This document shows positions 1 through 62,059 of a stretch of DNA of 64,000 bases, in pieces. The position numbers were made by a program, and so were the translations under genes. The first letter of the stretch is position 1. Each line of letters begins with the position of its first letter. The notes beneath the pieces were generated by a model. That model saw only the letters and a list, made by a program, of their open reading frames with translations. It was not told the DNA's origin and made no database searches. Location of the stretch: assembly GCF_902652985.1 (NCBI RefSeq), contig NC_047018.1, positions 31,930,001 to 31,994,000 of the forward strand. The letters run 5' to 3'. This stretch comes from Pecten maximus (taxonomy: Eukaryota).

Positions 1-224
1 ACACACAGTTTAATAGGCCTATTTTTTTTAAGACAATGAATTCTGCATTTTTGTTTTCCTTCACAAAATACTAGTTGTATAGTAGAATATCAGGAATGGC
101 AGCAAAAAACAACAGTGCTGAAATACTCATAATTCTTAAATTACAAATATGCCTTCTTGAAACCTAACAGATCTTCAGATAATCTAGATTTTTTTCCCTA
201 TTAGTCTGGTCATGAACTACTCAC

Positions 225-2183
225 CCTGATTTGTTCATTCCTCTCCTTTTTGGCAGCATCTCTGAGCTTCTTGTTTTCAGCCTCCATGAGCCTACGACAT
301 CGACGGTCTGGTGCCTCTCTTGTATCATACTTTTCCACCCACACAAAAGACTTGGCTGTCTGGAAACTTTCCCAGAAGTCATAGAATGGCTTCACCACCT
401 AGATACATCAAGTAAAATAACATGCAATCAAATCTTACTACCTAGTAGAACATGTACAGACTAATATTGTCAGAAAAATAAAGTTACAGTGAACTTCACT
501 ACTGTGAATACAACATTTCCCTTTTGAACATGTTACTCTAATATCATTGCAAATTGTAGATCACAAGAAGTTGTTTAGATAGTTTTAAATCTACTTTCAT
601 GTCATAGATCTACCAACCTGACCCAATTTCTAATGGTTGAGCGTCAAAATGATCAGTTGACTGATGTACACAGTATTAAATCCAAGTATGATGTTACTTT
701 ACAGGTAAAACAAAAACAGTCCTTTATATTGTTTGGTTTGGTTTTGTAATGTTTACCGTCCTATCAACAGCTAAGGTAATTTAAGGAGTTATTCAAGCAG
801 CACACAGGATGAGAAGATGTACCTCAAAAACTGATTGTCCACCTATATATAGCTATACTTCCTGATGTTCTACAACAGAGACTCACTTCTTCATAAGAAC
901 TCTTAGAATTTCCAAATTCTGGAAAATCACAATCACTTTCTCGATCATCCATGAAATGGTAATCTTCTTCAGACAGTTTCTTAAACACATCTAGGTATAC
1001 ACAGTAAAATCCCTGAAAAAGAATCAGAAAAAATTAAATATATACAAATTCCATAAACAATCGTGATCTTATCAGTTATAGGTAACAATTCCATCTTCAC
1101 AAATTACTGTTTTTGTAAGTTTCTCAATAAAAGTATACAAATAATTTTATGCGAGCTGAAACTTACATTTTCATCATCATCAAACCCAGAATAACAAGAG
1201 GAATTGAAGTACTGAAACACATCCATGCTGTCATCTTCATAGTTATCACCATGACCAAGACCTGCAACATACAAAATTGTCTTTGTATAAATCACATATC
1301 ATTTTTAAAATTAAGTCTTTCCATTACTTAGCACTTTAAAGTGATAAACAGAGAAATGTATGGTAGTGTAAATTCTCCTCTCTCAAGTATATACTATCTA
1401 ATCAATAGAACTCTATACTTGAAACACATCAGAAAAAAATGATCCCCCTCTTTTTCATCATAACAATTTCATTAAACTTAACTTTTTATTACATTAAAAG
1501 GTATTCAAACTATAAAAATCATATATAATTACTGCTGGCTTCCTTAGAATATTTTGTTAAACATTAAATAAACTGATTGTGAGATATAGGGACCACACAA
1601 ACTCTGACAGTGATATATACACTCTCTACCCGCTACGTGCCAATTAATGGGAATATCGCAGGAACAATAACCCTGAGTTGAGGACTGATTTACTGATGGA
1701 TAATAAATTATTATCAATATATACAATACCAGTGACAAGTTGAACTGACTTACCTCCCTTGAGTATAGCTTCCCTGTGTTTGTCGTACCATGCACGCTCC
1801 TGTGGGTCACTGAGAACATCATATGCCTGTTGTACTAGTCGGAACTGGGATGTACACTCCTCAACATTGTCTGGATTTTTATCTACAAACGTCAAAGATA
1901 ACATTTAATATTCACTAAACTTAAAGGGCTAGTGCTTATATACATGCCATTCAAATCGATGGACTCTATTGGGTTGAAGCGTAATTAATTGTTAATGTTT
2001 ACATTATATGTGAGCCACAGACAATATAGATGAACATTCTCACACCGTTACTAAAAGCTGACTGCATGTTTTGTAGGTTTGTATACCTGGATGCCATTTA
2101 AGGGCCAATTTTCTGTAGGATTTTTTTAGATCATCTGCACCAGCATCCCTCTCTACACCCAGAACCTGGTAATGACATTTCAT
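225..2183 (-). CDS. DNAJC21: DnaJ homolog subfamily C member 21 (Jjj1-like J-protein), 5' portion; gene continues beyond position 1
   Basis: Phase-consistent GT-AG exons 2183-2087, 1882-1754, 1261-1167, 1012-887, 398-225. They encode [36 protein letters not shown] (J-domain HPD split by an intron), [35 protein letters not shown] and [18 protein letters not shown]...[24 protein letters not shown], the characteristic DNAJC21/Jjj1 N-terminal region. Confidence 0.95.
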
Positions 2184-10900: not shown

Positions 10901-13900
10901 TTCACAATGGAGATGACCGTGTCCTGTTCACTGGAACACAAAGACAACAGATCATCAGACATGTTCAAGTAGGACATAAACATTTAAAATCAAGGTCAAG
11001 ATGCACCAACATTATAGCTATGAAGAGCTATAAATTAAAGACCTGCTTTTAATCTGTCTTTACTACCTTACAGAACATGCTTAAGACCCAGATTAAATCA
11101 ATTTCTATTTTTTATATTTTGGTAAATTCTTCAATAGTTTGTAGATACCAAAACATGTTATACTGATGTGTCCTTAATCCCTACCGTGTGAAATAAAAGA
11201 AATCAAGCATATTTTCTACAAGTGACGCATACTTACTGCGAGTGTAAACTTGTCATGACAACTGAGGGTCTCTGTGGACTTCGCCTGAAAGAAGATCCTA
11301 CATTCCCATGAAATTTGGATCTTGATTTTTGTGCCCCATCACTATCACTGCTCGACTTGTCACTGTCACTAAACTTCTGCTTGTGTTGGCTTACTGATGA
11401 CTCGGAGAATGCTTTTTTCCTTGGTTTGCTGCATGACTTGATCTTCTTTATATTGAATTCATCAATACTGGGTCTTGGTGGTGCAAAACCAGAAATGGAA
11501 GAAGCCATGGTATCATCCCCAAACACAGTGGACAAGGACATACCGTGTGGACCAGTTGTCTGTAGGGTTGATTCAGTCTGTATATTTGAAGCACTCAAAC
11601 TACTGTCATTTTCTAACATATCCCTCATTATATTTTTGACTGGAGCAGTGTAACTTACTGCCTTATCACTCTCTTCACTACTAGAAAACATGTCATTTGT
11701 CTGTGGATGTATGGAATCAGACCTGCTTCCCTTTCTGGACTTTTTACGAGACTCTTTATCGCCATCATCTGTCGTTACTTTCCTCTTCCGCCCCTTACGC
11801 ACCACATTTCCCGATTCTATAGAGCAACTATCAAGAATGCTTGGTTGTATTTTATCTGATTTCATTGTTGGTTCAATCAGAAATGAGCTAGGCAAATTAT
11901 CTTGCGGCAGTAACATCTTTATCTTTTTTGTGGGGATTTGCTTTCTTTGAGCCTGTAATTTGGCTCTAGTGCTATCATAACCTACTAAAGGAGGATCCAC
12001 ATTACCTGAAGATTCGTCAGAAGAGTCCTCCCCTATGTCATGGACTCCAGTACTTATTTGCTCACAATTGTCAGTTTGACTAGAAAGATTGTTAGAATTA
12101 CAAATAGCCGTCACACTGGCTGATACTGTGTCAGTCTTTGAAACAGAATATTGCTGCTCACTTTCACTGGACTTTCTGGTTGTAGACTGGTTGTCCTGAT
12201 TGATGACACTATCTGGGGCAGTGGTAAAGGTTACAGACTTTCTTTGTCCTCTACGTGAGGCAGGATCAGTTGCTCTTCTTCCACTTGTAACTGCCTCTCT
12301 AGAGGTATCTGATGCACAACTTCTACGTCTACTTGCCTCACCACTGGTCAAGCCCCCTTTGACAAGGGAGGGCTCTGATGCCCTACCCCTACTTGCCCCA
12401 ACTCCTTTCCTGGTCAATCTGTCAGGGGAGGGCTCTGATGCCCTACCCCTACCCCGACAGGCCCCACCTCCTCTACTAGTTACTTTGTTAGAGGATATGA
12501 CATTTGCTTCCCCACCTTTAATACTAGAAACATTCTCAACAACAGGTTTAGTAGCATTACTTTTACAAACCATCGATTTTCTACGTCCCTTTACTGCTGT
12601 TTTGCTATTTCCTTGACCTGGTTCTTTCAGCAGTAGTTCAGACTTTTTCCCAGTACAATCAGACAAATTTTCACCAGTTCTGACAGGAACTATGTCTTGT
12701 TGTCCAATATTTGAGTTGTCAGTATCATTGGAGTTTGTAGGTATGTCACTGGATTCTTCCGTGACATTACTGTCCAGACTGACAGATGTTACAACAAGGG
12801 ACTTCCGACGTCGAGATGATCTGGTAGGCAAATCCACATAATCTTTCTCTGATATTTTTACTGAAGGCATTGATTTGCGGCGATTATTCATCCTCTTAGT
12901 TGATGGTAACTTTGGTGTCTCAAGAGTTTCCAATGTAGCTGCTGTTTGTTTGCTGCGGCCATCATCAACTGCTGTTTTACCTGTTGATTTTGCTCTGTTC
13001 AATGCTAACAGCGGGTCCTCTTCCTCCACATCTATATTGTCTGTAAAGAAATATATATAATAGTACCATTGATTTCCCAAAAATATCACTGTCTTATATA
13101 TAGGTATATTTTCAATCTGATTATATGTTATGAAGATCTTATAGCTTGGCTAAAGAGACAAATCTACATTATCAGTGTTTTGATTATCATTTTTGCATGC
13201 CAGTTACCTTTATAAACTAATGCAAAGAAAAAGCTGAAAAAAATATTGAAGTCACTGATCATGAAAACTAGGTCAAGGACACCCATTTTCATATCTTATG
13301 TAATGTTGATCTCAACTCATGACAACACAATCTGCCAGCTTTGGTTAAAAAAGGTTATAGGTAAGATGAAAAGGAAGAAATTTCAGAGCCATGAAAATGA
13401 AGTGGCAGTAGTATTTGGTGTGATCTGAAGGGAACAAAATATACAATTACATATATAAACTTTATTACTTTATTTTAGAACAATTGCAAAACAAGCTGTA
13501 TATGAATATTTATACAAAAGCATGGTATCTTTTCACCTTTGGTAACTGTCTGCCTTCACATTAATTATGATAATCAATATAAACAATACGATAAACAATA
13601 GAATTATCACTGTACTATGGAAACTAGGCTACAATGACTTATTTACATATATAAATTATGTATTCATTAGTTATTAATTTTTGTGTTTAAGTCATCATAA
13701 CACAAAAAGCTTACATTGATCACTGTATGTCTGAATGTTGACAAGAGACAATATATGGACTTTCAATAATCTTTGAAGCCAGCATTCTGTTGCAACCAAG
13801 TCAAAAAATGTGATCAGTCCGGAAATATGTCAAATGGCACAGACAATTTTTTTCAAAATCAGACACAGCATGACCAGATGCTACAGATTAACCATTGTTA

Positions 13901-47418: not shown

Positions 47419-50393
47419 AAAGTTCTCTTGTTATTAAAAATGTTCCTGTACTTAACCAAGACCATTAACTCTCTTACTTTTTGTAATGTCACAAGTTCTA
47501 TGTCAGTTATAAAAGTTCATATGATCTTTACCTGGAACATGGCAATGGCTTTGTGAATGTGAGGTATGGTGTCATTACAAAATCCTATTTTGAGAAATAT
47601 AAATTGTATATAACTACTGGTTATGATTCCAGTTGAGATTTCAATTTCAATCAAATTAAAATAAATCTTATTTGTAAAAGGATTTAAAAACAAAAAAATT
47701 TAAAAGGTTGAGGTTGATTGCGATTGATATTTAACAATGTGGTGTAAAATGGTAGTAGACAAGGTATCACAAATTAAAGCCTTTCACCTGGAAGTGTATT
47801 CAACATACTACGCCATAGACTATGGCATTGGATAAAGGTTGAATTGGTACAGTTAATATCAGAATGATTTTTTTTAGTTATCAAAATGCCTACTTCTGTA
47901 ACATCTATCACATTCAGGAACATGTCAATGAATATTTTGTATAAAATTCCCAATTGTTAAATTTTCATCAATTCAATGAGAATATGGTCCCCTTATTTTG
48001 TACATAATATTAATATAAGCTGAAAATCCAAACACAATCATATTTGTATTACCATTATCAAATAAACCATGTTAACAAAATAAATCATTGACTCAGTAAT
48101 ATCTTATTTCATATCAATTATCTCTTTTCATTATAATTAAATACATGTACATACAATGATAAAGAAGAAAAAAATCGGGACCTGAGAATTTTATGCAAAT
48201 AAGTGGTTTATTCAAATAAGCGATATGCAAATAAGTGGGCTCCTCTGTACATGCAAATCATTGAATAGACAAGTTATCCAAAGGTTTTAAAAGTAAACAT
48301 ATGTACATATAATCACAGTATACTGCCTGGGCAACTTAATCTAGAATGAACATATATCTCTTATTATTTGTTAGTGAAAAATCATTATTTCAAAGGAATT
48401 TATTCCTTCTAAGTGCTGAATTATAATATTCTAGGAAATTTTGAAAATCAACAAATTCAGACACTCAAAGTTTCACTTAATATGCCAACAGAAGTGTTCA
48501 GACTGACAAGGTTTTATTTTATACACAAACCAAACATGTCTTACTTTAAGTGTTCTACATAAAATCAATAATTTTACAAAAAACAAACGCAGATCCAGTT
48601 TTACAAACAACCCGTCACTTTCACTTTACACACATGTAGACCAAAATAACCAGCCTTACAATGTTCTAATTTGAATAAAATTGACTGACATTATATTATT
48701 GTATACATATCAGGTATATCTTTTAATTCATCTTAGCAAACCATATTGATAGAAGATTTAATAAAGAGTTAAAATTAAGAATACAAATGTATCAGCATAT
48801 TAAAAGATAGCCTTTTGTCCACTGACACACCCACAGGGCTGACTTAGTGGGGTAATTAGACGTGTCCAATATATGTGTGTTCCCGATGATGCCCCAAGGG
48901 CCGATCTTGGTCTGGTCTGTGTGGCATTTGATGCATCTTTAGACCAGTCATGGTAGAGTTCTTTGATGAAACATGCACCTGAAGGCCTGCCTTGGTGAGG
49001 TTATTTGATGCACTTTAAAACCCACTATGGTGAGGTAATTTGATACATCTGAAGGTATGCCTGGTAGGGTCACATGACCCACTCCAATTCCTGCCTTAGT
49101 TGGGTCAATTGATGCACCTGAAGGTCTGATTTGGTTTCTCTTTTGACTTTAGATGGTCACAGCTGGCATACAGAATTTTATCATTAATTAAACTTCTATC
49201 CATTAAATGGACAGTTGGTATGAGCAATATCACCACAGTAAGTCAGAACTATTTTTTCAAAACAGTACTTTTAAAAATAATCCTGACGAGAAATATTTCA
49301 GAACTTATTCAATTATATACATCTACAGTTATACAGTATACATTTTTTCATTACAGCATTCATTCACCACAATCATTACCTTACTGGTATACAAGACCAA
49401 TCACCACAATCACCACCCATACTGGTACACACACCATTCACCACAATCACCGACCATACCAGTACATCAAAACAAAAATAACCATATTAAAACATCACTA
49501 CAGTAATCACAGCCATGCCAATGATAATTTTACATTACAAACATATCACATAATAATGTACAAATTCCAAAGTCCAAACATTCTGGTCAGTAAATTGTGT
49601 CAAACTTGTGCTTCACAGAACAATCACACATCATTGCATTTTAGGGATTTGTGAAAGTGTCGCACAATAAACAACGCAAGTGTTTGGTTAAAGCAACCAA
49701 AGACATATTATAATCAGCATGATTGTTCATTATGGCACTATATTTCTAATGCCTTTTTGTAATTAAATGTTATTAGCCTTCAAGGCGTGAGGGAACTTTA
49801 TTATTTTATAAAAATTAAAATTGCCATGACCTTTAAAATTTGGTCATAGGTCAAGATTAATGTTACTTGATTTTAGTATTACACCTTAAATTGCTTATTA
49901 TATACATTTTAATACAGTATAAAAGTTTCAATTCATTCATATTTATTCCTGGTAAGTTTGTACTGTAGTAATTATATAAAATCTGAGAACTTTCTGAAAA
50001 GCATTCAGATGTCATGACCGTATTTATCCTGTAATAAGCCAAGAGGGACAACACACAGATTTTGACAAAGTGGATAGGTGCTTATTGCAGTACACTGAAA
50101 TAGCATTTATATATGGGAGGGCTTATTACAAGGCATTGACTTATTGTTGAATGAATACGGTAGTTGTGTAAAAGATTACTTTATTACCTGTATCAAGCTC
50201 TGGCCAATGATCTGAAAATATACATCACATATCTACACTGCACAAAAGCAAATTCCAGGTGTTTATGAGGTATTCCCATACTTATCATGCTCCAATGAAG
50301 GGATGAAAACTTTAAGACAGTGTGTTTTTTTTCTTCAAAATATGAACTTGATAAAATATCACATATTGTCTAACATGATTATGTCACCAGAAA

Positions 50394-53300
50394 TCAGCTG
50401 TACCCTCGCGGTACTACATACTTTTTGACTCTCTCCAATACCACTGCCATGTGCTGCTTGTACAGGCGGTCGTTACTCAGGTCCACACAACTATACTTGG
50501 CAATAATCTTTCGCACCTGGTCTGGGGCACTTTCAAGGGGAGAGAACCGGAGAAGTACAGGAATGATTGGTTTATTGAATGTCTCTGCCAGAGTTAGATC
50601 TTTCTTACAGTTGTCGCTCTGGAGGTATTTCGGAGTGATACAGCTCACAACTACAGCTGAAGCCTTCATGTTGCGTTGGATCTGGCTCTGAAGAGTCTCA
50701 CCACCGACCTCCAGTAGGGTTACACTGCTGCGACTACTCTTGCTGCTGTGGCCGCGTGGCTGGGTGGTGCTAGCCATAGTGATGTCAGCCCAGCACTGAA
50801 GCCCATTGTTTTCTAACATCTGTTTGATGTCTAGAACCTTCCCCTGCATGTCCCACTGGTAGCTGATGAATACCTGAGGTTCACCTTCCTTATAGTACTG
50901 TGACTGTGTCCCTTCAGAGATCAACACAAAATGTCAGGTCAGGTCATACACAAATTATCTGATAACATTTATAAAACATGAATACACCATGCTCCACCTT
51001 GATGGATTTAACCCCTCATTGTAGTAAAAATAGGTCACTGTGACTTACGTTTTATATTTTGGTGTTGCATTCCTCAAGAATGGCATATATACACCTCATA
51101 CAAAGTTTAGATAAGGATTGGTCTTCCAGTGGATATATATTGGGTTAGATTCAAAGTGTAAATAAGAATGAGACTACATATTGTAATACAGAAATATTGG
51201 ATATCTATCATGCAGACCTGATTTCATCCACTTTAGTGAGAGTCATCAACAAAAGTACTGGCACACAGTCCCGTAATTACACAAGTATCTGTTTTATTAC
51301 AGTCTGTCATCAACAAAAGTACTGGCACACAGTCCCGTAATTACACAAGTATCTGTTTTATTACAGTCTCCTCATCTAACACAGTTTAAAGTTAAAGATA
51401 CATTAGACATTTATCTACAACTGAAATCTATATTTACCTGGTGAGACAGTGCCCAGGACCTCGAGAGGCTTGAGACCTTCCGCCATCTTGTTGAGATACG
51501 CCTGTTCCAGGACTACACCTGGAACTCGCCTCAGGGGTTTGATGTGGTGCTCCAATACATCCAGACTCTCGTTGTACATTTTGGTTTCAAAATCGACAGA
51601 AGGGCATTCACCTGTTAACATCAACAACTCTTGTAATGTAAAATAACAAACAGAAGAGCATATAACTGTAAACATCAACAAACTAGTAATGTAACTAACT
51701 GACGGAAGGGCATTTACCTGTAAACATCAACAACTAGTAACGTAACTAACCCAAAAGAAGAGTATTTACCTGTTAACATCAACAACTAGTAATGTATCTT
51801 AACCAACAGAAGGGCATTTACCTGTAAACATCAACAACTAGTAATGTAACTTAACCGACAGAAGGGCATTTACCTGTAAACATCAACAACTAGTAATGTA
51901 ACTTAACCGACAGAAGGGCATTTACCTGTAAACATCAACAACTAGTAACATAACTAACCCAACAGAAGAGTACCTATTTACATTTACCTGTAAACATCAA
52001 CAAATGTACTTATCTGTTTTCTACACAAAATATTTCAATAGATACAATTCTAAACATAAATATCAACTGAATTAATTATGAATTTACACAGTGAAACTTG
52101 TCTGTTTACTTATAGACTGTGTCATTATTACAGATCTATATTTTGTTTTTCCTCTCGAGATATGTGTTATCATTTGTCATGATTTTACTGTCCTACTTAC
52201 CTAGCACCGCTTTCAAGGAGGCCCTGAAGTTCATCCAGACATTTTTAAACATGGCAGTGACAAGTTTCTTGCCAAGCCAGTCGGCAAACAGGACCTCATG
52301 GAAGACAAAGGGAGATGTGGTGGAAGCATCTGTCAGAAGGACTACAATTTGGGATGATGTGGCCATGACAGGCCCATTGATGAGCAGGAACTCTTCCTTG
52401 GATTTTCCTAGTTTCATGCTGTCATGGTGTAGCACCTAGGATACAAAGTAGAAAATTCATCAGACAATAGCTAGATTGTCAATCACAGTCAATAAAGGAT
52501 ATGTAGCGCCTCGGATACAAGGTAGATAACTCATTGTACAATAGCTAGATTGTCAATCACAGTCAATAAAGGATATGTAGCGCCTAGGATACAAGGTAGA
52601 TAACTCATTGTACAATAGCTAGATTGTCAATCACAGTCAATAAAGGATGTGTAGCGCCTAAGATACAAGGTGTATAACTCATTGTACAATAGCTAGATTG
52701 TCAATAAAGGATGAGTAGCCCCTAGGATACAAGGTAGATAACTCATTGTACAATAGCTAGATTGTCAATCACAGTCAATAAAGGATGTGTTGCGCCTAGG
52801 ATACAAAGTAGAAATTTCATCACACAACAGCTAAATTGTCAATCACTGTTAATAAAGGATATGTAACGCCTAGGATACAAGGTGGATAACTCATTGAACA
52901 ATAGATAGATTGTTGATCACCTTCAATAAAGATAAATTAAGCTAATAAACCACAAACAAAATATGGCAGAGAACTTTTGAAAAATTTGGCTGACTATTCC
53001 TTTAACCATCATTATAAGAAATTATATGTACTTGAAAAATAACATATTTATATAGTCAGCTCCATATACAAGAGGCTTTAAAATGTTTGTTTCTATAAAA
53101 GGGACATCACAGAAAACCCGTTGTTTTTATTGACTGTTCATGTTTTATAGACTTCCAATTACATGTCTATGCTATTCCAATATTTGCATGAATTTCCAAT
53201 GTCCAGCTTAACTTGACCACTCAATTTAGTCATGAACCCTCTCTTAATTTAGCATAGATAACATATATCACGTGGTTGTTTTGAAACAGGCACTCATTTC

Positions 53301-56300
53301 TAAACAGGAATACATGATGCATGACGTGACACAACAGTACATGTAAACACCTGTTTTAAACATCCGATTTAGTTTAAGTTGCGGCAATGTTATTTGATAA
53401 CTCAAAGTAAATTCAGAATTATCAAAAAGCAAACTTCTAGGGATTTCTTTTGCCCACTTGGCCATCTTTTGTTTTTTTAACTGATGTTGTAACCTTTTAA
53501 AACCACAGACGATTCACTTGAGAGGCCATTTTTGTTTTACAGGTGTTGCTGTGTTGTACACATAATTTATCATATATGATTCAAAATAATTTCATATCTA
53601 GACTGTTAATCAATGATGAGAGATTTCCCTTTTATAAGTATTAATTAGCATCTTAATGTACATATTTCAGTGAAATCCATTTATCATTGCCCATAAGGCA
53701 ATACATGTTATATATGCAATAATAAGAAAATAACAGTATAAAAATTGTTTTATTTAAATGTTCCTTTAATATCATAACTTAAAAAAAAATTATTTCTCAA
53801 AAAGATAGAATGCCATATTGGTAAAATACAAAATACCTTCACAAATTGGTTATGTATAATGCATAAAATTACTGAATGTGCCCCCCCCCCCCCCCCTCAA
53901 ACTCATATCAGAAAATAACCCCACCCTCCTAAATGAAAATACATACCCTTGTATCAAAAAATTAACCTACCGTAACCCTCATTTCACAAAATACACCCTA
54001 CCCTCATACCAGAGGCTCATACCCTCATATCAAAAAATTAGCCATGAGGCTAATATATTGTATTATGTCAATGTTCAGAATTCAACTTGAGAAAAAAAAA
54101 CAAAACTTTTGATCTACAAAACTAATTTATCATTTCTGACACACCAATAAACTTCTATTACTATTATGAGTGATAATAATACATTAATTATACAAGTGAT
54201 AGATATCTTTAAAATCAAATTAGCTTTTCATGTAAACTCCCTGATCGCTGGCTTCTGTATTTGATTAGGTGTCTGCGTGACTAGTCAATAAGCATATTTT
54301 TATGTATGCCTCAGTAAACCAGAAAATAAGTAGCGTATACATTTCATGGTCACGTTTATAAAAGGATCCTATCTATTTAAGTTTATATAAGAGAAGGATT
54401 CTTAAAATTCAAATCATCTCATTCATGTGCTAGCTAGCAACTGGTGTTTTTTTCACTAGGTAATCTCATATATGTATATATATATATATATTTACCCACT
54501 AAATTCCCTGAAACACTCCTGTCATTCAAACATCCCACTTTACACAGTTCTGATAAGGTGAACCATGTAATATGGTAACGGAGCTGTGGGCTCCCTTTGA
54601 CCTGCCAACACAGGTAGTACATGCGGCAGAGAAATTGATATCCAATAACATTTATCAAAGATCACTTAGAAAATTGATAGACTGTATTGAATTGAACATT
54701 GTTGACTGAAAGCTAGGCCCATGTCATAACACAGTAGTGTTCTTCATTGTTAATCCACGAAATTGGATACCTATAGAAAAATCTGAATGAATTCACGTCA
54801 CATGAACATTTATCCATAATGTCAACATCCATCTCTGAGGGAAAGGACATGTTATACATGAAGTGATAAGTAAAGCTTACACAGCTTGGACAACACAGTC
54901 ACCCTGACACGAGAGTAAAGTGAAAAATCTTTTGTGAGAGACTCGTTAACAATTACCCTTATTGACATGTGACTTGTTATAGGATCATAATGTATACTTG
55001 CTAACATGGTATTAGAGGTTTTGTTGCATTAAGGCAGATTAATTTGTAGATTTGTCACACTCAGAAGTATAAATAGGGGACTAGTGTTCACCGGATCTTA
55101 CTTACGCCCAATGTCATAGCATTAATTACTGTCAGATATATGGTAATTTTTTATTATCACTACTCACTAGCAACAATTTCCTTTGAAAGACACTAATTCA
55201 CCTGTTCTCAAACTCTACCTACTAGTTCCGCACTCAATTAAAATGTTCAATTTTCACACAAATGTGGTATTTCTTTATCTATAAGCTAATGATTAAAGTA
55301 TAAATTTATCTCCTTATTACACTGAAATAAAAAAAAAATATTGTATCAACTGTTTAATAATTTGACTTTATGAAATTATTTTATTCCAAACATGAAGCAA
55401 GAAAATTCAACTATGTTATAAATTTCAGTTCACAAATGTGCTAATTACCACAGGTTAATATATCTTGTCTAATGTTTAAATCATAAATTAATATCAACAT
55501 TACACTGAATTAATAAGAATATTATATTCAACTTCTTAATTATCAATTATTTCAAAAAACTTCACTTCCATATGTACTGGCTCATACACTCCTATTACTG
55601 GGTTTTTTAAACAAACATCTACTGTAACAATTATCCTGGAGAGAGGGGGCTTGTCTAGCATACTATGAAAGGAAACCTTTTACTGAAATTATCTCTTAAT
55701 ATTAAAACAATGGCTAGTTGGCCACCCATGTAAACAATAGTATTGTAAAGCAAGAGCACTTTTTCTAACAACATGCATTTGATTTTGGATCTATTTAGTT
55801 ACACAACCCAAAATGACCTTAAACTTTGACCTTTAATTGTTTCTGAAAATCAATGGGTTCATTCCTCTCATGAAGAGAAATAATTATAAGTATTCCAAAT
55901 TTTACTCCATGGTATTGGATTACCAACTTTGTTGCATGACCCAAAGTTTATGGGACCCTTTCCTGAAGAAAAATAAATACTGGTATACCAAGTTTGATGA
56001 ATATTTACAACTTATTCTGTTAACCCAATGTAACCTTGACCTTTTTATCCCACCCTCTGAAAATTAATATGTCACTCTCTCATAAAGGGAGACAACTTAT
56101 GCCAAGTTTGATTATCCTTCATGGTATTTTTTTTCTTGTTGTAAATTGTATATAGTACTTATCTTATTCAACAATGAATTCCTTATCAAAGTTAATTTTG
56201 GCATATGATTAAAATGTCAATTTCAGAAATCCTTTTCATATTTAACATCTTATTTTTGAAAATTTTTCCTCAATATTTACATTTTTGTATATTGATAATA

Positions 56301-59300
56301 TTGTATTCCAAGAAAAATCTTATTAACAAAACAAAACAAAATATTGGAAGGAGGATCAGTGCACTTTTTGGATCCTTAATTTGGACATTAATGATCAGTT
56401 AAACCTCTTTATCAGTGTCTATATTATTATTCATCATTAAAAAAGTTGATCAATGGGAGATCTAATAATTTTGAGGCTTGTTTTTTTTAACATACTCAAT
56501 ATCCCCTATGGAAATACCAAGTATGTTATTGATATATATATATCCGTTGCATTTTCGATTGAAATCAATAAAGAACAACCTGTCCAAACTGTCAAAAATG
56601 TCTATACAAAAAAGTGCATTATAAATATACCAGGACTAGTCTCCAAGGGTTTTCTTTGTCAAGCACTCACTTGAGGTATCAATGGGTATCCACAATGGAC
56701 TCTTACATGTGGTGTGATCATTTTCATAGACTTGGCAAAGGGTAAAGCTCTAACATCGAAATAACACTGTCGCTGGACAAACATGAAAGCTTGTAACTTC
56801 AGAAGTTTTCAGCACATCTTACGACTCAAGTGACAAACATGGTATATTGAATCGGGATTGTGATCAACTCAAGGGTCACCAAGGCTCTACTGGAAACACA
56901 GATTATCTCCTTTATATCAAAATTGGAAAATATAAATCCATATTAAAAGTTAAAACCCTCCTCAATTCTCTGTCATGTACTTGTCAAATCTGTGGGAGAT
57001 AGTGGTGTGTTTTGTTTGGAGACATATTTCTCTGTGACAACCTATAGTAGCTGCAGACATTGGCTCAGTATGTGAAACTCTGCCTATGTACTATACCTAT
57101 AACTGATAAATATCACTACTGTCACCCTAACAGTTCATAAAAAATGGTGTATTAAGTGAGATTTTATCATCAAAAATCTTGGCACAATGAGGTGCTGTTA
57201 ATGACTTCTCATTTTCTTGGCTCATTATTTAGGGACTCTGATCTCAAAATTTCAAGTAAGATTTTGTTAAAAAAGAATTAATATGGTAGAGTTCTTCTTA
57301 TTCAAGTTTACCTACAGCTCAATAGAGATGAGAGGTTACTAATATGTATCGGAGGGTAATTACTAGCACTATGACTACCAAAACTATTTTCCTTTGTGAA
57401 ACAACTACTAAAATATCATTTTTTGAATGTGTGTCATTTGTCAATATATAGAATTGAAGATATAGATAAGAAAACAAAAGTGTTAAATCAAAGTGACTTA
57501 ACTACCATGTACAAGTCATGATATATATACAACCATGCATATGCATCATTTCAGCTTCAATCCCTTTCCACATACAATATGTCAAATTTGACATATGACG
57601 ACTGTGTTTCAATACTTGGTAACTGTGATGTTTTATGAGGTAGGCCTGGGTAACATAATTTATTCCGGCTATTTCAGTGGTAAAATGTTATAAATCATGA
57701 TAGTGATACCAATGAATTCACACTGTCCATTGTTGTTTACATTTCATGCCAATTTTATTTGACAAGAGGAAATTTACAACCTAGTACATTGCAGACATTT
57801 ATAAATTTTAAAACTCAACATGCAGTTCCAAATATCGAAAAGTGTCAATTTTAAACCTTTGGACCACATATTAATAGCTATAAAAAGTGTGATTTTATAG
57901 ATCTTGTTCGCTTTATGTTTTGTACACATCGTGTTCTGAGCCTATATAGCGTACTTTTGTATCACTTATAATTAGCTTTAAGTGGCAGTCCTGAGTGAAA
58001 ACAGATAAAATTATGTTTACATGGGGAATAATAAATACCTGCTTATAACACAAGCAATAAAGTGATTAACAGATTCTTTTTTCACTAGAGTCGCAAACAT
58101 TAAAAGTTATTACACCAGTGTTTCCTACCTATATATATACAAAGGTATATGTATAGGCCAACAGTAATGGAAAAAAATTATGTTGAAAAATTATAACTGA
58201 TAATAATATGTATTGTTTTTTTATACATCTATATGTGTTCTTTGTTGAAAACGCTGCCAATAATTTGCAACTGTTCCTCTTTAAATTTGAGATATATAAT
58301 ATGATAATGATATAGAGTAAAAATATCTAAGTTTAGTGGATTCATATCTTCACTTGCTTTCAATTTCAGTGTGCAATAGCTATAGTGTGGTCAGTGTGTG
58401 ATTGCTATAGTGTGGTCAGTGTGTGATTGCTATAGTGTGGTCAGTGAGCGATTGCTATAGAGTGATCAGTGTGTGATTGCTATAGTGTGGTCAGTGTGTG
58501 ATTGCTATAGTGTGGTCAGTGTGTGATTGCTATAGTGTGGCCAGTGTGTGATTGCTATAGTGTGGTCAGTGTGTGATTGCTATAGTGTGGTCAGCTTGTG
58601 ATTGCTGTGATGTGGTCAGTGTGTGATTGCTATAGTGTGGTCAGTGTGTGATTGCTATAGTGTGGTCAGTGTGTGATTGCTATAGTGTGGTCAGTGAGCG
58701 ATTGCTATAGAGTGATCAGTGTGTGATTGCTATAGTGTGGTCAGTGTGTGATTGCTATAGTGTGGTCAGTGTGTGATTGCTATAGTGTGGCCAGTGTGTG
58801 ATTGCTATAGTGTGGTCAGTGTGTGATTGCTATAGTGTGGTCAGCTTGTGATTGCTGTGATGTGGTCAGCGTGTGATTGCTATAGTGTGGTCAGTGTGTG
58901 ATTGCTGTGATGTGGTCAGCGTGTGATTGCTATAGTGTGGTCAGTGTGTGATTGCTATAGTGTGGTCAGCGTGTGATTGCTATAGTGTGGTCAGTGTGTG
59001 ATTGCTATAGTGTGGTCAGCGTGTGATTGCTATAGTGTGGTCAGTGTGTGATTGCTATAGTGTGGTCAGCGTGTGATTGCTATAGTGTGGCCAGCGTGTG
59101 ATTGCTATGATGTGGTCAGCGTGTGATTGCTATGATGTGGTCAGCGTGTGATTGCTATGATGTGGTCAGCGTGTGATTGCTATAGTGTGGCCAGCGTGTG
59201 ATTGCTATGATGTGGCCAGCGTGTGATTGCTATAGTGTGGTCAGTGTGTGATTGCTATAGTGTGGTCAGCGTGTGATTGCTATAGTGTGGTCAGTGTTTG

Positions 59301-62059
59301 ATTGCTATAGTGTGGTCAGTGAGCGATTGCTATAGTGTGGTCAGTGTGTGATTGCTATAGTGTGGTCAGTGTGTGATTGCTATAGTGTGGTCAGCTTGTG
59401 ATTGCTATAGTGTGGCCAGCGTGTGATTGCTATAGTGTGGTCAGTGTGTGATTGCTATAGTGTGGTCAGTGTGTGATTGCTATGATGTGGTCAGTGTGTG
59501 ATTGCTATAGTGTGGTCAGCGTGTGATTGCTATGATGTGGTCAGTGTGTGATTGCTATAGTGTGGTCAGTGTGTGATTGCTATAGTGTGGTCAGTGTGTG
59601 ATTGCTATAGTGTGGTCAGTGTGTGATTGCTATAGTGTGGTCAGTGTGTGATTGCTATAGTGTGGTCAGTGTGTGATTGCTATAGTGTGGTCAGTGTGTG
59701 ATTGCTATAGTGTGGTCAGTGTGTGATTGCTATAGTGTGGTCAGTGTGTGATTGCTATGATGTGGTCAGTGAGCAATTGCTATGATGTGGTCAGTGAGCG
59801 ATTGCTATAGTGTGGTCAGTGAGCGATTGCTATAGTGTGGTCAGTGAGCGATTGCTATAGTGTGGCCAGCGTGTGATTGCTATAGTGTGGTCAGTGTGTG
59901 ATTGCTATAGTGTGGTCAGTGTGTGATTGCTATGGTGTGGTCAGTGTGTGATTGCTATGGTGTGGTCAGCGTGTGATTGCTATAGTGTGGTCAGTGTGTG
60001 ATTGCTATAGTGTGGTCGGTGTGTGATTGCTATAGTGTGGTCAGCGTGTGATTGCTATAGTGTGGTCAGCGTGTGATTGCTATAGTGTGGTCAGCGTGTG
60101 ATTGCTATAGTGTGGTCAGCGTGTGATTGCTATAGTGTGGTCAGTGTGTGATTGCTATAGTGTGGTCAGTGTGTGATTGCTAAAGTGTGGTCAGTGTGTG
60201 ATTGCTATAGTGTGGTCAGCGTGTGATTGCTATAGTGTGGTCAGTGTGTGATTGCTATAGTGTGGTCAGTGTGTGATTGCTAGAGGTCCCAAGTGTGAGA
60301 TTGCTAAAAACTTGTCAGTGTGTGCTCTAACTTATGTCAATGTTTGATTGCTATAACTAATGTCAGTGTGTCATTGCTATAGTTTTGTGAATATTTATCT
60401 CAAGTTAAAATTGTTTGAGGTAAAAGGCCCATATGGCGATATGCTATAGATAAAACTGTATATATTAGATTTAAATGGTCCCCTTATGCAAGTTTATAGC
60501 TCATTAAAGCAAGAACTGCTCATAACAGCATGTATCAGAGTATAGAAATAGATCAGCAGATAACTGACATGGTCCCAGCTGATGGATGTATAGACAGAAT
60601 GAACAGCTCACCTCACCCTGCATTTGTGTATTCCATATGACAGATTTTTAATTTGTGTGAAATTGTACCTCCCATTTGGACTGACCAAGCCCCAGTTAAA
60701 TCAATCAATGTTCTTTAACTTAATCCATAGGAAAACATCGCAGCATTTAAGGAAAATATCCTAGCTTAGGAACCTTCCTTCAATTCTGTTATTTGTCCTA
60801 TGGAAAATTTTAAGTTAAGGAATTTATGTAAGTTACGAAACGTTGATGAAACTGAATCCTGACCTTATTATATATGAATTAATTTATATATGCAGGTTTG
60901 AGTTATGTCTTACCTGCAGATTTTTCTTCTTCAAGTCGGCTTTAAGATTCTGTGCGAGTCGGACATCTGCTGGATCATACACCAGATAGATGACATCGGG
61001 TTTAGCACGTAGAGCACGCGCGCGAAGATGCCAGTTGTCTTTCTGTTTGTGTTCCAAGTCCAGCGTGATGAGAATCTGCTGCATGATCTTTTTGCGAACA
61101 ACACGACTATCGATCCCAAGGTGTTGAATCATGTCATGGTCTGTCAATGACATTAGCAGAAATCCATCCACCATATTTTCAGCCAAACTTTGACGATAAA
61201 ATTCCTTTATTCCCAAATTGAAGAGCCACTCCTGTAGGTCACTAGCACTCCACTGACATATCTTCTTTTTTTTGTACTCCTCTGTGAATTCTGTGTCAGG
61301 TGGTGGCACAGGTGTAGGGGGAATATTCATGGAGGCATATTTTTCTAGTTCCTCCATAATACCCCCTATAACTACTGATGTTTTCTCTGCTAGACTCTTT
61401 TTCACATGGTCTTTACTTAAATCTACTGCATGTTTTATTAATAAGAAGTAATCTTTAGGAATTTCTGTGTTGTCTAAAGATGAGAAGATGATGGGAAAAA
61501 TGGCTACAGAGTGCGGGTCTTGTCGTCGTCTTTGTAAAAGTGTTTTACTTTCATACATTGACACAGGACATGAAAAGTAACTTGGGGAGAAAAATAGAAT
61601 TGAGGCACGACATTTTTCCACTGCCTCCATGCGCAAAGAGAACCACACAGGGCTGTCTGTGTTTTTTTCGTCCTTATCAAACCAAATATCCTCTGCAAGA
61701 TTGTTTTCCTTTAGCTGTCGCACTGTGTCCACCACAAATTTCCTCTCTACAAACCCAGCATCAGGGGAGTAAGAAATGAATATACCTCTCTTCATCTTTT
61801 TTGTTTTCTGAGGGGGTGCCACATGTGGTGCAAATTCATGGCTATGTGTAATGCCTCCTCCCTCAGCGGCTCGCTTGTTACTGTCCATGTGTTGTGTATT
61901 AGTGGAATCCTTCAGAGCTTGTTTTGACACAGCTTCTCTGGCTCTGTCAGGTTGAGAACGAACATTCGACACAGAATCAAACTGGTTGATATCTTCTGTC
62001 TTGTCTTTGATTTCCACCGTCACGGAATTTTCAATCACATCTGACTGTTCGGTATTCAT
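50394..62059 (-). CDS. TIR-SAM-TIR-TIR cytosolic protein, 690 aa
   Basis: Exons 62059-60914, 52435-52201, 51611-51438, 50911-50394 (GT-AG, phases 0/1/1, 2073 nt). TIR1: IFISYS...IWFD...ILFFSPSYFSCPVSMYE...IFPI. SAM: WSASDLQEWLFNLGI...VDGFLLMSLTDHDMIQHLGI...RKKI. TIR2: IYLVY...IVVLLTDASTTSPFVFHEVLFADWLGKKLV. TIR3: VFISYQWD...CWADI...CITPKYLQSDNCKKDLTLA...KPIIPVLL. Confidence 0.9.
51243..51369. repeat. Direct duplication of ~63 bp
   Basis: GTCATCAACAAAAGTACTGGCACACAGTCCCGTAATTACACAAGTATCTGTTTTATTACAGTCT occurs twice in tandem. Confidence 0.9.
51596..52005. repeat. 52-bp tandem repeat anchored on the exon-3 splice acceptor of the TIR gene
   Basis: Unit CAGAAGGGCATTTACCTGTAAACATCAACAACTAGTAATGTAACTTAACCGA, ~8 copies; the first copy overlaps the exon boundary at 51611. 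Confidence 0.9.
52428..52935. repeat. 74-bp tandem repeat anchored on the exon-2 splice acceptor of the TIR gene
   Basis: Unit CCTAGGATACAAGGTAGATAACTCATTGTACAATAGCTAGATTGTCAATCACAGTCAATAAAGGATATGTAGCG, 7 copies; the first overlaps the boundary at 52435. Confidence 0.9.
58368..60285. repeat. 25-bp satellite (~76 copies) in intron 1 of the TIR gene
   Basis: Unit GATTGCTATAGTGTGGTCAGTGTGT; highly homogeneous. Confidence 0.96.

Follow-up and report, generated by a model that had tools for sequence, protein, structure and literature searches.

The question raised by this locus is whether a protein that joins three TIRs to a single SAM in one chain is an NAD+-cleaving signalling enzyme or a non-enzymatic adaptor. 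Its gene lies in a window of 64,000 nucleotides from Pecten maximus (contig NC_047018.1, positions 31,930,001 to 31,994,000), which is the whole stretch of DNA that was analysed and to which all coordinates refer. Each feature described is on the minus strand.

The locus is a genuine, expressed gene with spliced transcripts, and the 918-Mb genome has one copy of it. The gene runs from 62059 to 50394, and open reading frame and splice-site analysis gives four exons and a product of 690 amino acids. Exon A (62059..60914, 382 codons) starts with the ATG at 62059 and ends at a splice donor; it covers the N-terminus, which is predicted to be disordered, together with TIR1, the SAM and the opening strand and helix of TIR2. 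Exon B (52435..52201), bounded by splice sites, contributes the middle of TIR2 from alphaB to betaD. Exon C (51611..51438), bounded in the same way, completes TIR2 and adds a highly conserved extension (51442-51537), in which 13 of 32 columns of the family alignment are at least 90% conserved. Exon D (50911..50397) holds a short linker and TIR3, and is followed by the stop codon, TGA (50396..50394). Every intron has GT..AG ends, and the phases are 0/1/1. The joints 50910|51437 and 51609|52199 are present in RNA-derived contigs, in which the introns have a depth of zero. The third junction is represented by a loose contig end at 52437 that continues into the end of exon A.

The product carries TIR1 at amino acids 88-240 (61340..61798), identified by Pfam TIR_2 and a fold match, and a single SAM at amino acids 264-337 (61049..61270), identified by Pfam SAM_2 and by profile and fold matches. 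On exon A, Pfam reports TIR_2 at 5.8e-9 (amino acids 93-217) and SAM_2 at 1.3e-8 (amino acids 270-329). The strongest TIR_2 match of the protein is found on exon D (3.6e-16). Exons B and C give no Pfam match when each is scanned alone, so that Pfam does not detect TIR2 from single exons of the window. Among homologues, Pfam counts TIR2 in the full-length orthologue P0259, as the third of its TIR_2 stretches; the domain is subthreshold in the fragment P0144 (21.2 bits against a cut-off of 28 bits) and undetected in the fragment P0146. Pfam finds no domain beyond TIR and SAM in the protein, including no Arm match, and no transmembrane-like segment is found outside the TIR cores.

The expected folds, three TIR and one SAM, are confirmed for all four domains in models of two homologues: the full-length orthologue from Mizuhopecten and a SAM+TIR2 fragment from paddlefish. 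For the orthologue, the AF2 model scores a pLDDT of 83 and a pTM of 0.68, with pLDDT values above 90 in all four domains and predicted disorder over the N-terminal 84 residues. Foldseek returns C. elegans TIR-1 and human SARM1 as its best matches (E 8e-8 to 1e-6). Within this model, TIR1 (88..239) aligns with the TIR of RPP1 (Z 14.2, rmsd 2.6, 141 aligned) and TIR3 (529..683) with the TIR of human SARM1 (Z 17.3, rmsd 2.2 A, 126 aligned). TIR2 in the P0146 fragment model aligns with the TIR of Hydra TRR-2 (Z 15.7, rmsd 2.7 A, 124 aligned) and with that of SARM1 (Z 14.8). The fold matches of the TIRs also include the filament-forming adaptors MAL, MyD88, TRIF and TRAM. By sequence profile, the nearest solved relatives of TIR1 are the adaptor MyD88 and TLR2 (MyD88/MAL type, E 7e-4); the death domain of MyD88-type adaptors is absent from the scallop protein. 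The SAM resembles those of Shank3 (Z 12.7, rmsd 1.3), DGK-delta (Z 12.2, rmsd 0.9) and SARM1 (Z 12.1), and its family profile finds SARM1 SAM1 as the best solved structure (E 1.1e-11). An earlier, sequence-only reading of the window had described three TIR folds around one SAM and no transmembrane, LRR, death or ARM region; Pfam, the segment check and the folds of the two homologue models agree with it.

The catalytic Glu of SARM1 and of plant and bacterial TIRs lies at a fixed position in helix alphaC. By alignment and modelled secondary structure, TIR1 and TIR2 of the scallop protein have Glu at this position and TIR3 has Asp. The residues concerned are E170 (codon 61552-61550), E429 (52297-52295) and D623 (50600-50598), each the sixth residue of alphaC in the orthologue model. 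All three are aligned with each other in profile-profile comparisons (TIR2-TIR3, E 3.9e-4; TIR1-TIR3, 0.08; TIR1-TIR2, 0.23). D623 pairs with the catalytic Glu of the SARM1 WVHKE motif in two separate alignments, and the structure matches include an entry titled “Sarm1 E642A”. MyD88 has a Gln at the canonical position, and E170 pairs with it. One result is contrary: a local hhalign comparison of TIR2 with the TIRs of SARM1 orthologues (E 0.0029) sets the SARM1 Glu on a TIR2 Lys through a shared “DW”. This alignment is discounted as it places betaD of TIR2 on alphaC of SARM1, though it still counts against the assignment of E429. In SARM1 and plant TIRs, an aromatic residue stands four positions ahead of the Glu in a W...E pattern; at that distance TIR1 has Val and TIR2 has Phe.

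Judged by sequence, an ancient TIR-SAM-TIR-TIR family of animals, extending from cnidarians to non-teleost fishes, has its scallop orthologue in this gene. The family order of TIR, SAM, TIR, TIR is found in one cytosolic chain of the family length of about 600-800 amino acids, and when the exons are aligned one by one to 12 full-length members, the junctions show no gap. Exons A and D share 94% and 96% identity, respectively, with LOC110462547 of Mizuhopecten yessoensis (P0259), which has the same length (690 amino acids), domain order and E/E/D pattern, with no difference of note. Members occur in sharks, bichirs, paddlefish and lungfish, with none among the teleost or tetrapod names listed. 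The family is already catalogued, as “Bf-TIR-SAM-like protein” or “uncharacterized protein” in databases, and several members bear the UniRef name “ADP-ribosyl cyclase/cyclic ADP-ribose hydrolase”. As these enzyme names show, automatic annotation arrives at the same NADase-type guess. A survey by Gerdol et al. in 2017 reportedly described “ecTIR-DC” families, among which we presume this one to be. An amphioxus “TIR-SAM” hybrid gene backed by cDNA was reported in 2008 (PMC2575513). The suggestion in the sequence-only reading that such an architecture may already be catalogued was correct.

Conservation was counted in 45 full-length homologues from a cnidarian to fishes, Nematostella included. 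The pattern at the catalytic position is near-invariant, with Glu in TIR1 in 44/45, Glu in TIR2 in 44/45 and Asp in TIR3 in 45/45. Lymnaea has Gly at the TIR1 position. The vertebrate members examined, from bichir, paddlefish and lungfish, have Gln at the TIR2 position in 3/3 cases with the remainder of TIR2 conserved, so TIR2 serves some function for which the Glu is dispensable.

TIR3 also differs from its paralogues in a Ser-rich insert (50697..50777) that carries an R..S..S.R motif. The stretch sits between betaB and alphaB, which is the BB loop, and its pLDDT in the orthologue model is below 50. The four residues of the motif are kept in 41/45 (R), 42/45 (S), 42/45 (S) and 41/45 (R) homologues, while the rest of the loop is variable. 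In paralogous TIRs of the same genome, 4/4 examined loci keep the Glu and have a 21-residue gap in place of the insert. By this comparison, the TIR3 Asp and the 21-residue BB-loop insert are derived. What had been proposed from the letters of the window is upheld here: the numbering E170, E429 and D623 is reproduced exactly from the spliced model, alignment and model secondary structure put all three residues at the alphaC catalytic position, apart from the one contrary alignment of TIR2, the Asp of TIR3 holds throughout the 45 homologues, and the model places the Ser-rich insertion in the BB loop.

The system that resembles this protein most closely is that of SARM1 and C. elegans TIR-1, an NAD+ hydrolase of ARM-SAM-SAM-TIR architecture. 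It is the best overall structural match, the SAM of the scallop family is nearest in sequence, among solved structures, to SARM1 SAM1, and TIR3 has an acidic residue at the E642 position. Unlike SARM1, the scallop protein has no ARM domain, its first TIR being preceded by an N-terminal stretch of 84 residues predicted to be disordered; it has one SAM rather than two and three TIRs rather than one; and its SARM1-like C-terminal TIR3 carries Asp, not Glu. The possibility that this gene is the SARM1 of the genome was considered and rejected on the missing ARM, the single SAM, the Asp in TIR3 and the presence of SARM1 exons elsewhere. Exons that are 58-69% identical to a SARM1 orthologue sit on another contig of the same genome, and the true SARM1 orthologues P0217 and P0195 have two SAM stretches each. 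With the TIRs of plant TNLs and of bacterial Thoeris ThsB, SPARTA and AbTir, the protein shares the common fold (Z 12-17) and, in TIR1 and TIR2, the alphaC Glu of the catalytic members. It differs from them in having its TIRs in tandem within one chain and in lacking an NB-ARC/LRR, Argonaute or SLOG partner.

Members of this family may signal in immunity by cleaving NAD+. The preferred reading, to which we give an even chance, is that of a cytosolic multi-TIR signalling enzyme clustered by its SAM, with TIR1 and TIR2 processing NAD+ and TIR3 as a partner. Two-TIR composite active sites are known from SARM1 and plant resistosomes. In such a self-contained enzyme, the SAM would cluster the molecules, and either this clustering or the pairing of TIRs within a chain would form a composite site of two TIRs. 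TIR1 and/or TIR2 would convert NAD+ into an ADPR or cyclic ADPR signal. TIR3 would act as a non-catalytic or weakly catalytic partner, the long BB loop of which would gate the neighbouring site, possibly via phosphorylation.

In a preprint, animal non-TLR TIRs with this Glu are reported to be able to make cADPR in a Glu-dependent manner (10.64898/2026.04.20.719644). Of 61 animal TIRs bearing the Glu, this 2026 screen found only 12 to be active, and TLR2, IL-1R9 and IL-1R10 have the Glu and are inactive because it points away (10.64898/2026.04.20.719644). The alphaC Glu is thus insufficient, which weakens the enzyme reading. It is weakened further by the closeness of TIR1 to MyD88 and TLR2, the Gln of vertebrate TIR2, the Gly of Lymnaea TIR1, the Val and Phe found four positions ahead of the Glu in TIR1 and TIR2, the contrary alignment of TIR2 and the single SAM. 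A literature search found no activity data for any family member.

A non-enzymatic adaptor or scaffold is a real possibility, if one on the unlikely side. The TIRs and the SAM would then be interaction modules for assemblies of the TLR/IL-1R type, with the Glu/Glu/Asp pattern serving a structural or interface role. MyD88, MAL and TRAM are adaptors that nucleate or regulate such signalling assemblies. The MyD88 and TLR2 TIRs are the best solved sequence matches of TIR1, filament-forming adaptors are among the fold matches, and TIR2 is retained with Gln in 3/3 vertebrate members. The 49 of 61 Glu-bearing animal TIRs given as inactive in the preprint point the same way (10.64898/2026.04.20.719644), and papers citing the ecTIR-DC survey repeat the hypothesis that such proteins act as adaptors or regulators (PMC6321704). 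However, an interface by itself hardly accounts for a near-invariant acidic residue at the catalytic position of all three TIRs from cnidarians to chordates. In MyD88 itself, a Gln takes the place of the conserved Glu of TIR1, and the overall closest structures belong to enzymes, SARM1 and TIR-1.

The invariance of the TIR3 Asp bears on two further readings. The sequence-only reading proposed that SAM polymerisation activates TIR1 and TIR2, and that TIR3 is a catalytically dead, phosphorylation-controlled sensor or inhibitor in the role of the ARM. Its architecture, residue positions, conservation and the nearness of the SAM to SARM1 SAM1 all stand; its strong form is weakened by the Gln of vertebrate TIR2 and the inactive Glu-bearing TIRs. 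The likeness of the SAM to oligomerising SAMs in fold and the two derived features of TIR3, the Asp and the R..S..S.R motif in a disordered insert, would suit this model. It is nevertheless quite unlikely: a single SAM need not polymerise, the ARM of SARM1 is a metabolite sensor of a different fold, and an Asp kept in 45/45 members argues for a maintained function rather than decay. That same strict invariance would fit a protein in which all three TIRs are active and the Asp serves different chemistry (another cyclisation, base exchange or a nucleic-acid substrate, for instance) or yields a different product, and TIR3 is both the most SARM1-like TIR (Z 17.3) and the strongest TIR_2 match. This is very unlikely, as the Glu is described as essential in the preprint (10.64898/2026.04.20.719644) and the literature search found no report of activity in a TIR that has Asp there.

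A further reading, which we regard as rather unlikely, is an ancient, SARM1-independent NAD+-signalling enzyme of animals with a built-in asymmetric TIR pair. The Glu of TIR2 (or TIR1) would be catalytic, a kinase-controlled BB loop in TIR3 would gate the neighbour, and SAM clustering would set the threshold. The Asp of TIR3 would in that case have been fixed for more than half a billion years. If true, this would be the first two-TIR composite site hard-wired in one polypeptide, and a second TIR-enzyme pathway surviving in sharks, bichirs, paddlefish and lungfish.

The TIR1-SAM-TIR2-TIR3 protein is encoded by four open stretches of the minus strand that form one gene, with canonical GT..AG introns, consistent phases and a total of 690 residues. 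Exon A (62059..60914) supplies 382 codons from the ATG. It is followed by exon B (52435..52201) and exon C (51611..51438), both open stretches with canonical splice sites, and by the last exon, exon D (50911..50397), whose open stretch ends in a TGA. The residue numbers assigned by the sequence-only reading to the acidic residues of the three TIR domains (E170, E429 and D623) are reproduced exactly by this four-exon model. The exons were analysed singly rather than as a joined protein. Aligned as separate rows, their translations tile 12 full-length relatives end to end with no gap at the junctions.

RNA contigs from four runs of two studies were mapped over positions 50300-52600. A 2333-letter contig of runs X1 and X3 leaves out precisely the stretches 50911-51436 and 51610-52198, both GT..AG on the minus strand, and continues at 52437 into the end of the exon A sequence. 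The exon B/C joint is present in run X5, and the exon C/D joint (50909-51436) in run X6, where three extra letters add a Gly codon that X1 and X3 lack. Either allelic variation or a different choice of splice site may explain this codon; extra Gly residues at the same joint are also found in the Mizuhopecten yessoensis protein. Contig depth in the introns of this interval is zero. Given the joints in X1, X3, X5 and X6, all three exon junctions exist in RNA-derived assemblies. Sampled words of exon A, at least in part, return rows from 10 studies, and 96% are found in four runs of one study. Searched against the 918-Mb assembly, the last exon gives one full match, the other 15 being to distant TIR genes; the gene is single-copy in the Pecten maximus genome.

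Some features of the transcript and its introns were noted in passing. A 60-letter contig in X1 and X3 tracks the last exon as far as 50422 before its sequence departs, at a point that coincides exactly with a donor-like GTATGT on the minus strand. This suggests an alternative 3′ end, which would replace the last few residues. One tandem array extends into the 3′ splice site of exon B (52428-52931, 74 bp × 6.9 copies) and another into that of exon C (51594-51968, 52 bp × 7.2 copies). As the acceptor and the first exon letters are in both cases the last repeat unit, a look-alike acceptor lies in each upstream unit; only the last unit is used as the acceptor in the RNA contigs. Intron 1 holds about 81 copies of a 25-bp minisatellite unit (58366-60383, 92% matches), and this repeat explains why the GC skew spikes and ORFs are missing there.

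Exons A and D are 94% and 96% identical to the Mizuhopecten “uncharacterized protein LOC110462547 isoform X1”, which is also 690 residues long. The gene is thus, in a related pectinid scallop, an orthologue of that annotated gene. In Pfam scans of single exons, exon A yields TIR_2 and SAM, exon D yields TIR_2, and exons B and C alone yield no match. Three TIR_2 stretches and a SAM are recognized in the Mizuhopecten orthologue; among the first 10 longer relatives to be scanned, 7 share this set. A search of exon D as a single sequence against solved structures found no TIR, giving only a chance match to an unrelated chain (E 0.55), and a family profile was needed to obtain matches to TIRs of solved structure.

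An AlphaFold2 model of the Mizuhopecten orthologue, based on a 45-row alignment, has a mean pLDDT of 83 and a pTM of 0.68, with pLDDT above 90 throughout the four domains and predicted disorder at residues 1-84, 518-526 and 564-589. By Foldseek, the solved structures that it matches best belong to C. elegans TIR-1 and human SARM1. In VIA-align, the modelled TIR3 (529..683) matches the TIR of human SARM1 (Z 17.3, rmsd 2.2 Å over 126 residues), in effect a tie with the SPARTA and Hydra TRR-2 TIRs, which score within 1 Z of it. TIR1 (88..239) matches the RPP1 TIR at Z 14.2. As TIR3 filled the match list of the full model, a paddlefish fragment comprising SAM and TIR2 (P0146) was folded separately. 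Its TIR2 matches the TIRs of Hydra TRR-2 (Z 15.7) and SARM1 (Z 14.8), and its SAM those of Shank3, DGK-delta and SARM1 (Z 12.1-12.7). In Pfam, TIR2 alone reaches 21.2 bits in one fragment, and P0146 has no TIR_2 match. Since exons B and C likewise lack a match, the identity of TIR2 is settled by its fold, and by the models it is a true but divergent TIR. The proposed complement of three TIRs and one SAM is therefore borne out by Pfam together with the folds of the two models.

TIR2 and its C-terminal extension are the best-conserved parts of the protein, with a mean majority fraction of 0.75. The segment that follows TIR2 (51442-51537) has a level of conservation equal to that of the TIR cores, at or above 90% in 13 of its 32 columns; it is modelled as two short helices and a strand and matches no known domain. 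Near the N-terminus, the motif I-N-Q-F-D-S-V-S-N (61964-61990) recurs in other molluscs within variable, disordered surroundings, and may be a docking motif.

The protein is distinct from SARM1. SARM1 has an ARM domain and a Glu in its TIR, whereas this protein lacks an ARM domain, has one SAM and carries an Asp in its SARM1-like last TIR. Identity with SARM1 was rejected for these reasons, and is also ruled out by exons on another contig of this genome that are 58-69% identical to a SARM1 orthologue. A specific kinship of the SAM with that of SARM1 is not pressed, as several multi-SAM proteins outscore SARM1 orthologues with exon A; in a library of 1.84 billion proteins, the multi-SAM protein P0174 is matched at 9.5e-13 and the SARM1 orthologues P0195 and P0217 at 1.6e-7 and 1.2e-5.

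E170, E429 and D623 had been placed at the alphaC position of the catalytic Glu of SARM1. In the orthologue model, each is the sixth residue of alphaC (helices 164-179, 423-434 and 618-629). Domain profiles drawn from the 45-row alignment place all three in one column. The TIR2-TIR3 profile alignment has an E of 3.9e-4 over 130 columns; those of TIR1-TIR3 (0.08) and TIR1-TIR2 (0.23) are weak. When the family profile is compared with solved chains, the TIR3 Asp falls on the Glu of the SARM1 “VHKE”, position 615 of a 697-residue chain, in very weak stretches of -1.7 to 2.0 bits. This position would be E642 if the construct starts at residue 28. Alignment of the TIR3 profile to two SARM1 orthologues with hhalign again pairs the Asp with the SARM1 Glu (E 0.004, 115 columns), and the TIR1 Glu is paired with the Gln that MyD88 has at the corresponding place of the motif. 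One local TIR2-SARM1 profile alignment is contrary: through a common “DW”, it sets the SARM1 Glu on a Lys of TIR2. This register was rejected because it lays a modelled strand of TIR2 on what is taken here to be a SARM1 helix, and it is also contradicted by the TIR2-TIR3 alignment over 130 columns. It is judged, on model secondary structure, to be a mis-registration. Model secondary structure and profile alignment favour the placement, the local TIR2 alignment standing as a contrary result.

Conservation of these residues was assessed in 45 full-length members, defined as matches covering the whole protein. All fragments, mostly exon-A-only proteins, were left out, as were P0005 (without the exon-B part), P0123, and P0069, P0102, P0278 and P0283, the last four being partial in coverage or fusions. 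In P0123, a MetaClust protein, the TIR3 part precedes TIR1-SAM-TIR2, a likely sign that the model is misassembled or circularly permuted. Glu is found in TIR1 in 44/45 members, with Gly in Lymnaea, and in TIR2 in 44/45, with Gln in bichir; TIR3 has Asp in 45/45. Nematostella retains the E/E/D combination. With two fish fragments added, TIR2 has Gln in 3 of 3 vertebrate members within surroundings that are still conserved. The Glu of TIR2 has thus been lost in these vertebrates.

The family itself is broad. Exon A finds 121 proteins at E ≤ 0.001 in a 90%-clustered collection and 178 among 50% representatives, 48 of them at E ≤ 1e-30, and a search with one full-length relative finds 107. Named members come from bivalves, gastropods, annelids, a brachiopod, a nemertean, a bryozoan, hemichordates, echinoderms, amphioxus, tunicates, the cnidarian Nematostella and four non-teleost fishes (Erpetoichthys, Protopterus, Polyodon and Chiloscyllium). 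Among the matches listed, there are no arthropod, nematode, teleost or tetrapod names. Few animal TIR proteins outside the TLRs are as conserved as the TIR-SAM-TIR-TIR family, which spans Nematostella to lungfish. A match to exon A (E 1e-25, three stretches) is also given by P0153, a 673-residue protein of the green alga Bryopsis; this protein looks like two consecutive TIR-SAM units, and a similar TIR-SAM pairing would then occur outside animals.

Source names include “Bf-TIR-SAM-like protein” and the automatic labels “ADP-ribosyl cyclase/cyclic ADP-ribose hydrolase” and “NAD(+) hydrolase SARM1”. A 2008 report describes an amphioxus TIR-SAM hybrid gene with a recovered transcript (PMC2575513), and two later papers attribute invertebrate “Evolutionarily conserved TIR-domain-containing” families to Gerdol et al. 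2017 (PMC6321704, PMC8662601). The suspicion that the architecture was already catalogued proved correct, on the basis of the “Bf-TIR-SAM-like” names and the amphioxus report. The gene is an ordinary orthologue in a catalogued family, and no functional study of that family was found within the literature collection searched.

The Ser-rich insertion proposed for the BB-loop region of TIR3 does lie between betaB and alphaB of the orthologue model, in the BB loop, and the model predicts disorder for it. Each of its four R..S..S.R positions is retained by 41-42 of 45 members amid variable neighbours and common gaps, a pattern that fits a short linear motif. An Arg three residues before a Ser is a common basophilic-kinase pattern. 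Within this genome, the TIRs most closely related to TIR3 belong to four loci: a set of three almost identical copies, and a gene that lies 145 kb from the window. A Glu occupies the aligned position at all four loci, and at three of them the alignment shows a 21-residue gap in place of the insert. The Asp and the insert are on this account family-specific novelties that have since been frozen. The TIR domain of the neighbouring gene (L005, G000:C4:32123500-32128500, about 145 kb away) is encoded by two exons, with identities of 56% and 39% to parts of TIR3; it carries Glu at the catalytic position and lacks the Ser-rich insert. A haplotig-like copy of the gene lies on contig C123.

In SARM1, plant resistosomes and bacterial TIRs, activity requires TIR-TIR association, and the composite site includes the BB loop of the partner. 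The models and alignments show a conserved cytosolic protein with three predicted TIR folds, an oligomeriser-type SAM and acidic residues fixed at the catalytic position. By analogy, SAM clustering and/or intrachain TIR pairing would make NAD+ processing by TIR1 and/or TIR2 possible, with TIR3 in the role of partner and its long, possibly phosphorylated BB loop gating the site. The chance that at least one TIR of the protein processes NAD+ is put at about even. The general scheme has backing from a 2026 preprint by Hurieva and colleagues (10.64898/2026.04.20.719644), which reports that non-TLR animal TIRs with Glu produce cADPR in a Glu-dependent manner. The same preprint reports activity in only 12 of 61 Glu-bearing animal TIRs assayed, TLR2, IL-1R9 and IL-1R10 being inactive despite their Glu, and the prior for an enzyme is sober for that reason.

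A purely adaptor role is possible, but less likely than the enzyme. The sequence-only reading had cast TIR1 and TIR2 as an NADase activated by SAM polymerisation and TIR3 as a phosphoregulated sensor or inhibitor in place of the SARM1 ARM domain. TIR3 as an inhibitor is less probable than either the enzyme or the adaptor. The same ranking applies to activity of all the TIRs. Overall, the observation behind the earlier proposal is confirmed by sequence and model, and its interpretation is partly supported.

TIR domains are enzymes in bacteria, in plants and in SARM1. According to the 2026 preprint (10.64898/2026.04.20.719644), many other animal TIR proteins are enzymes as well. The present protein is unusually informative in having three TIRs per chain, a fixed Glu/Glu/Asp, a conserved regulatory-looking loop and a single-copy gene. 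If active, it would offer a compact system for how TIR-TIR pairing makes an active site and for the role of a permanently Asp-bearing TIR. If inactive, it would be a clear case of a “catalytic” position strongly conserved for non-catalytic reasons, and Glu-based prediction of TIR enzymes would be tempered. What is added here is the cnidarian-to-fish conservation pattern, the derived state of TIR3 and the disappearance of Glu from TIR2 in vertebrate members.

No second TIR gene was found within the 64-kb window. Other genes on the minus strand include a 618-residue Ser/Arg-rich open exon at 11233-13089 and a 128-residue ORF at 18905-19291, which by eye is taken to be BRCT-like.
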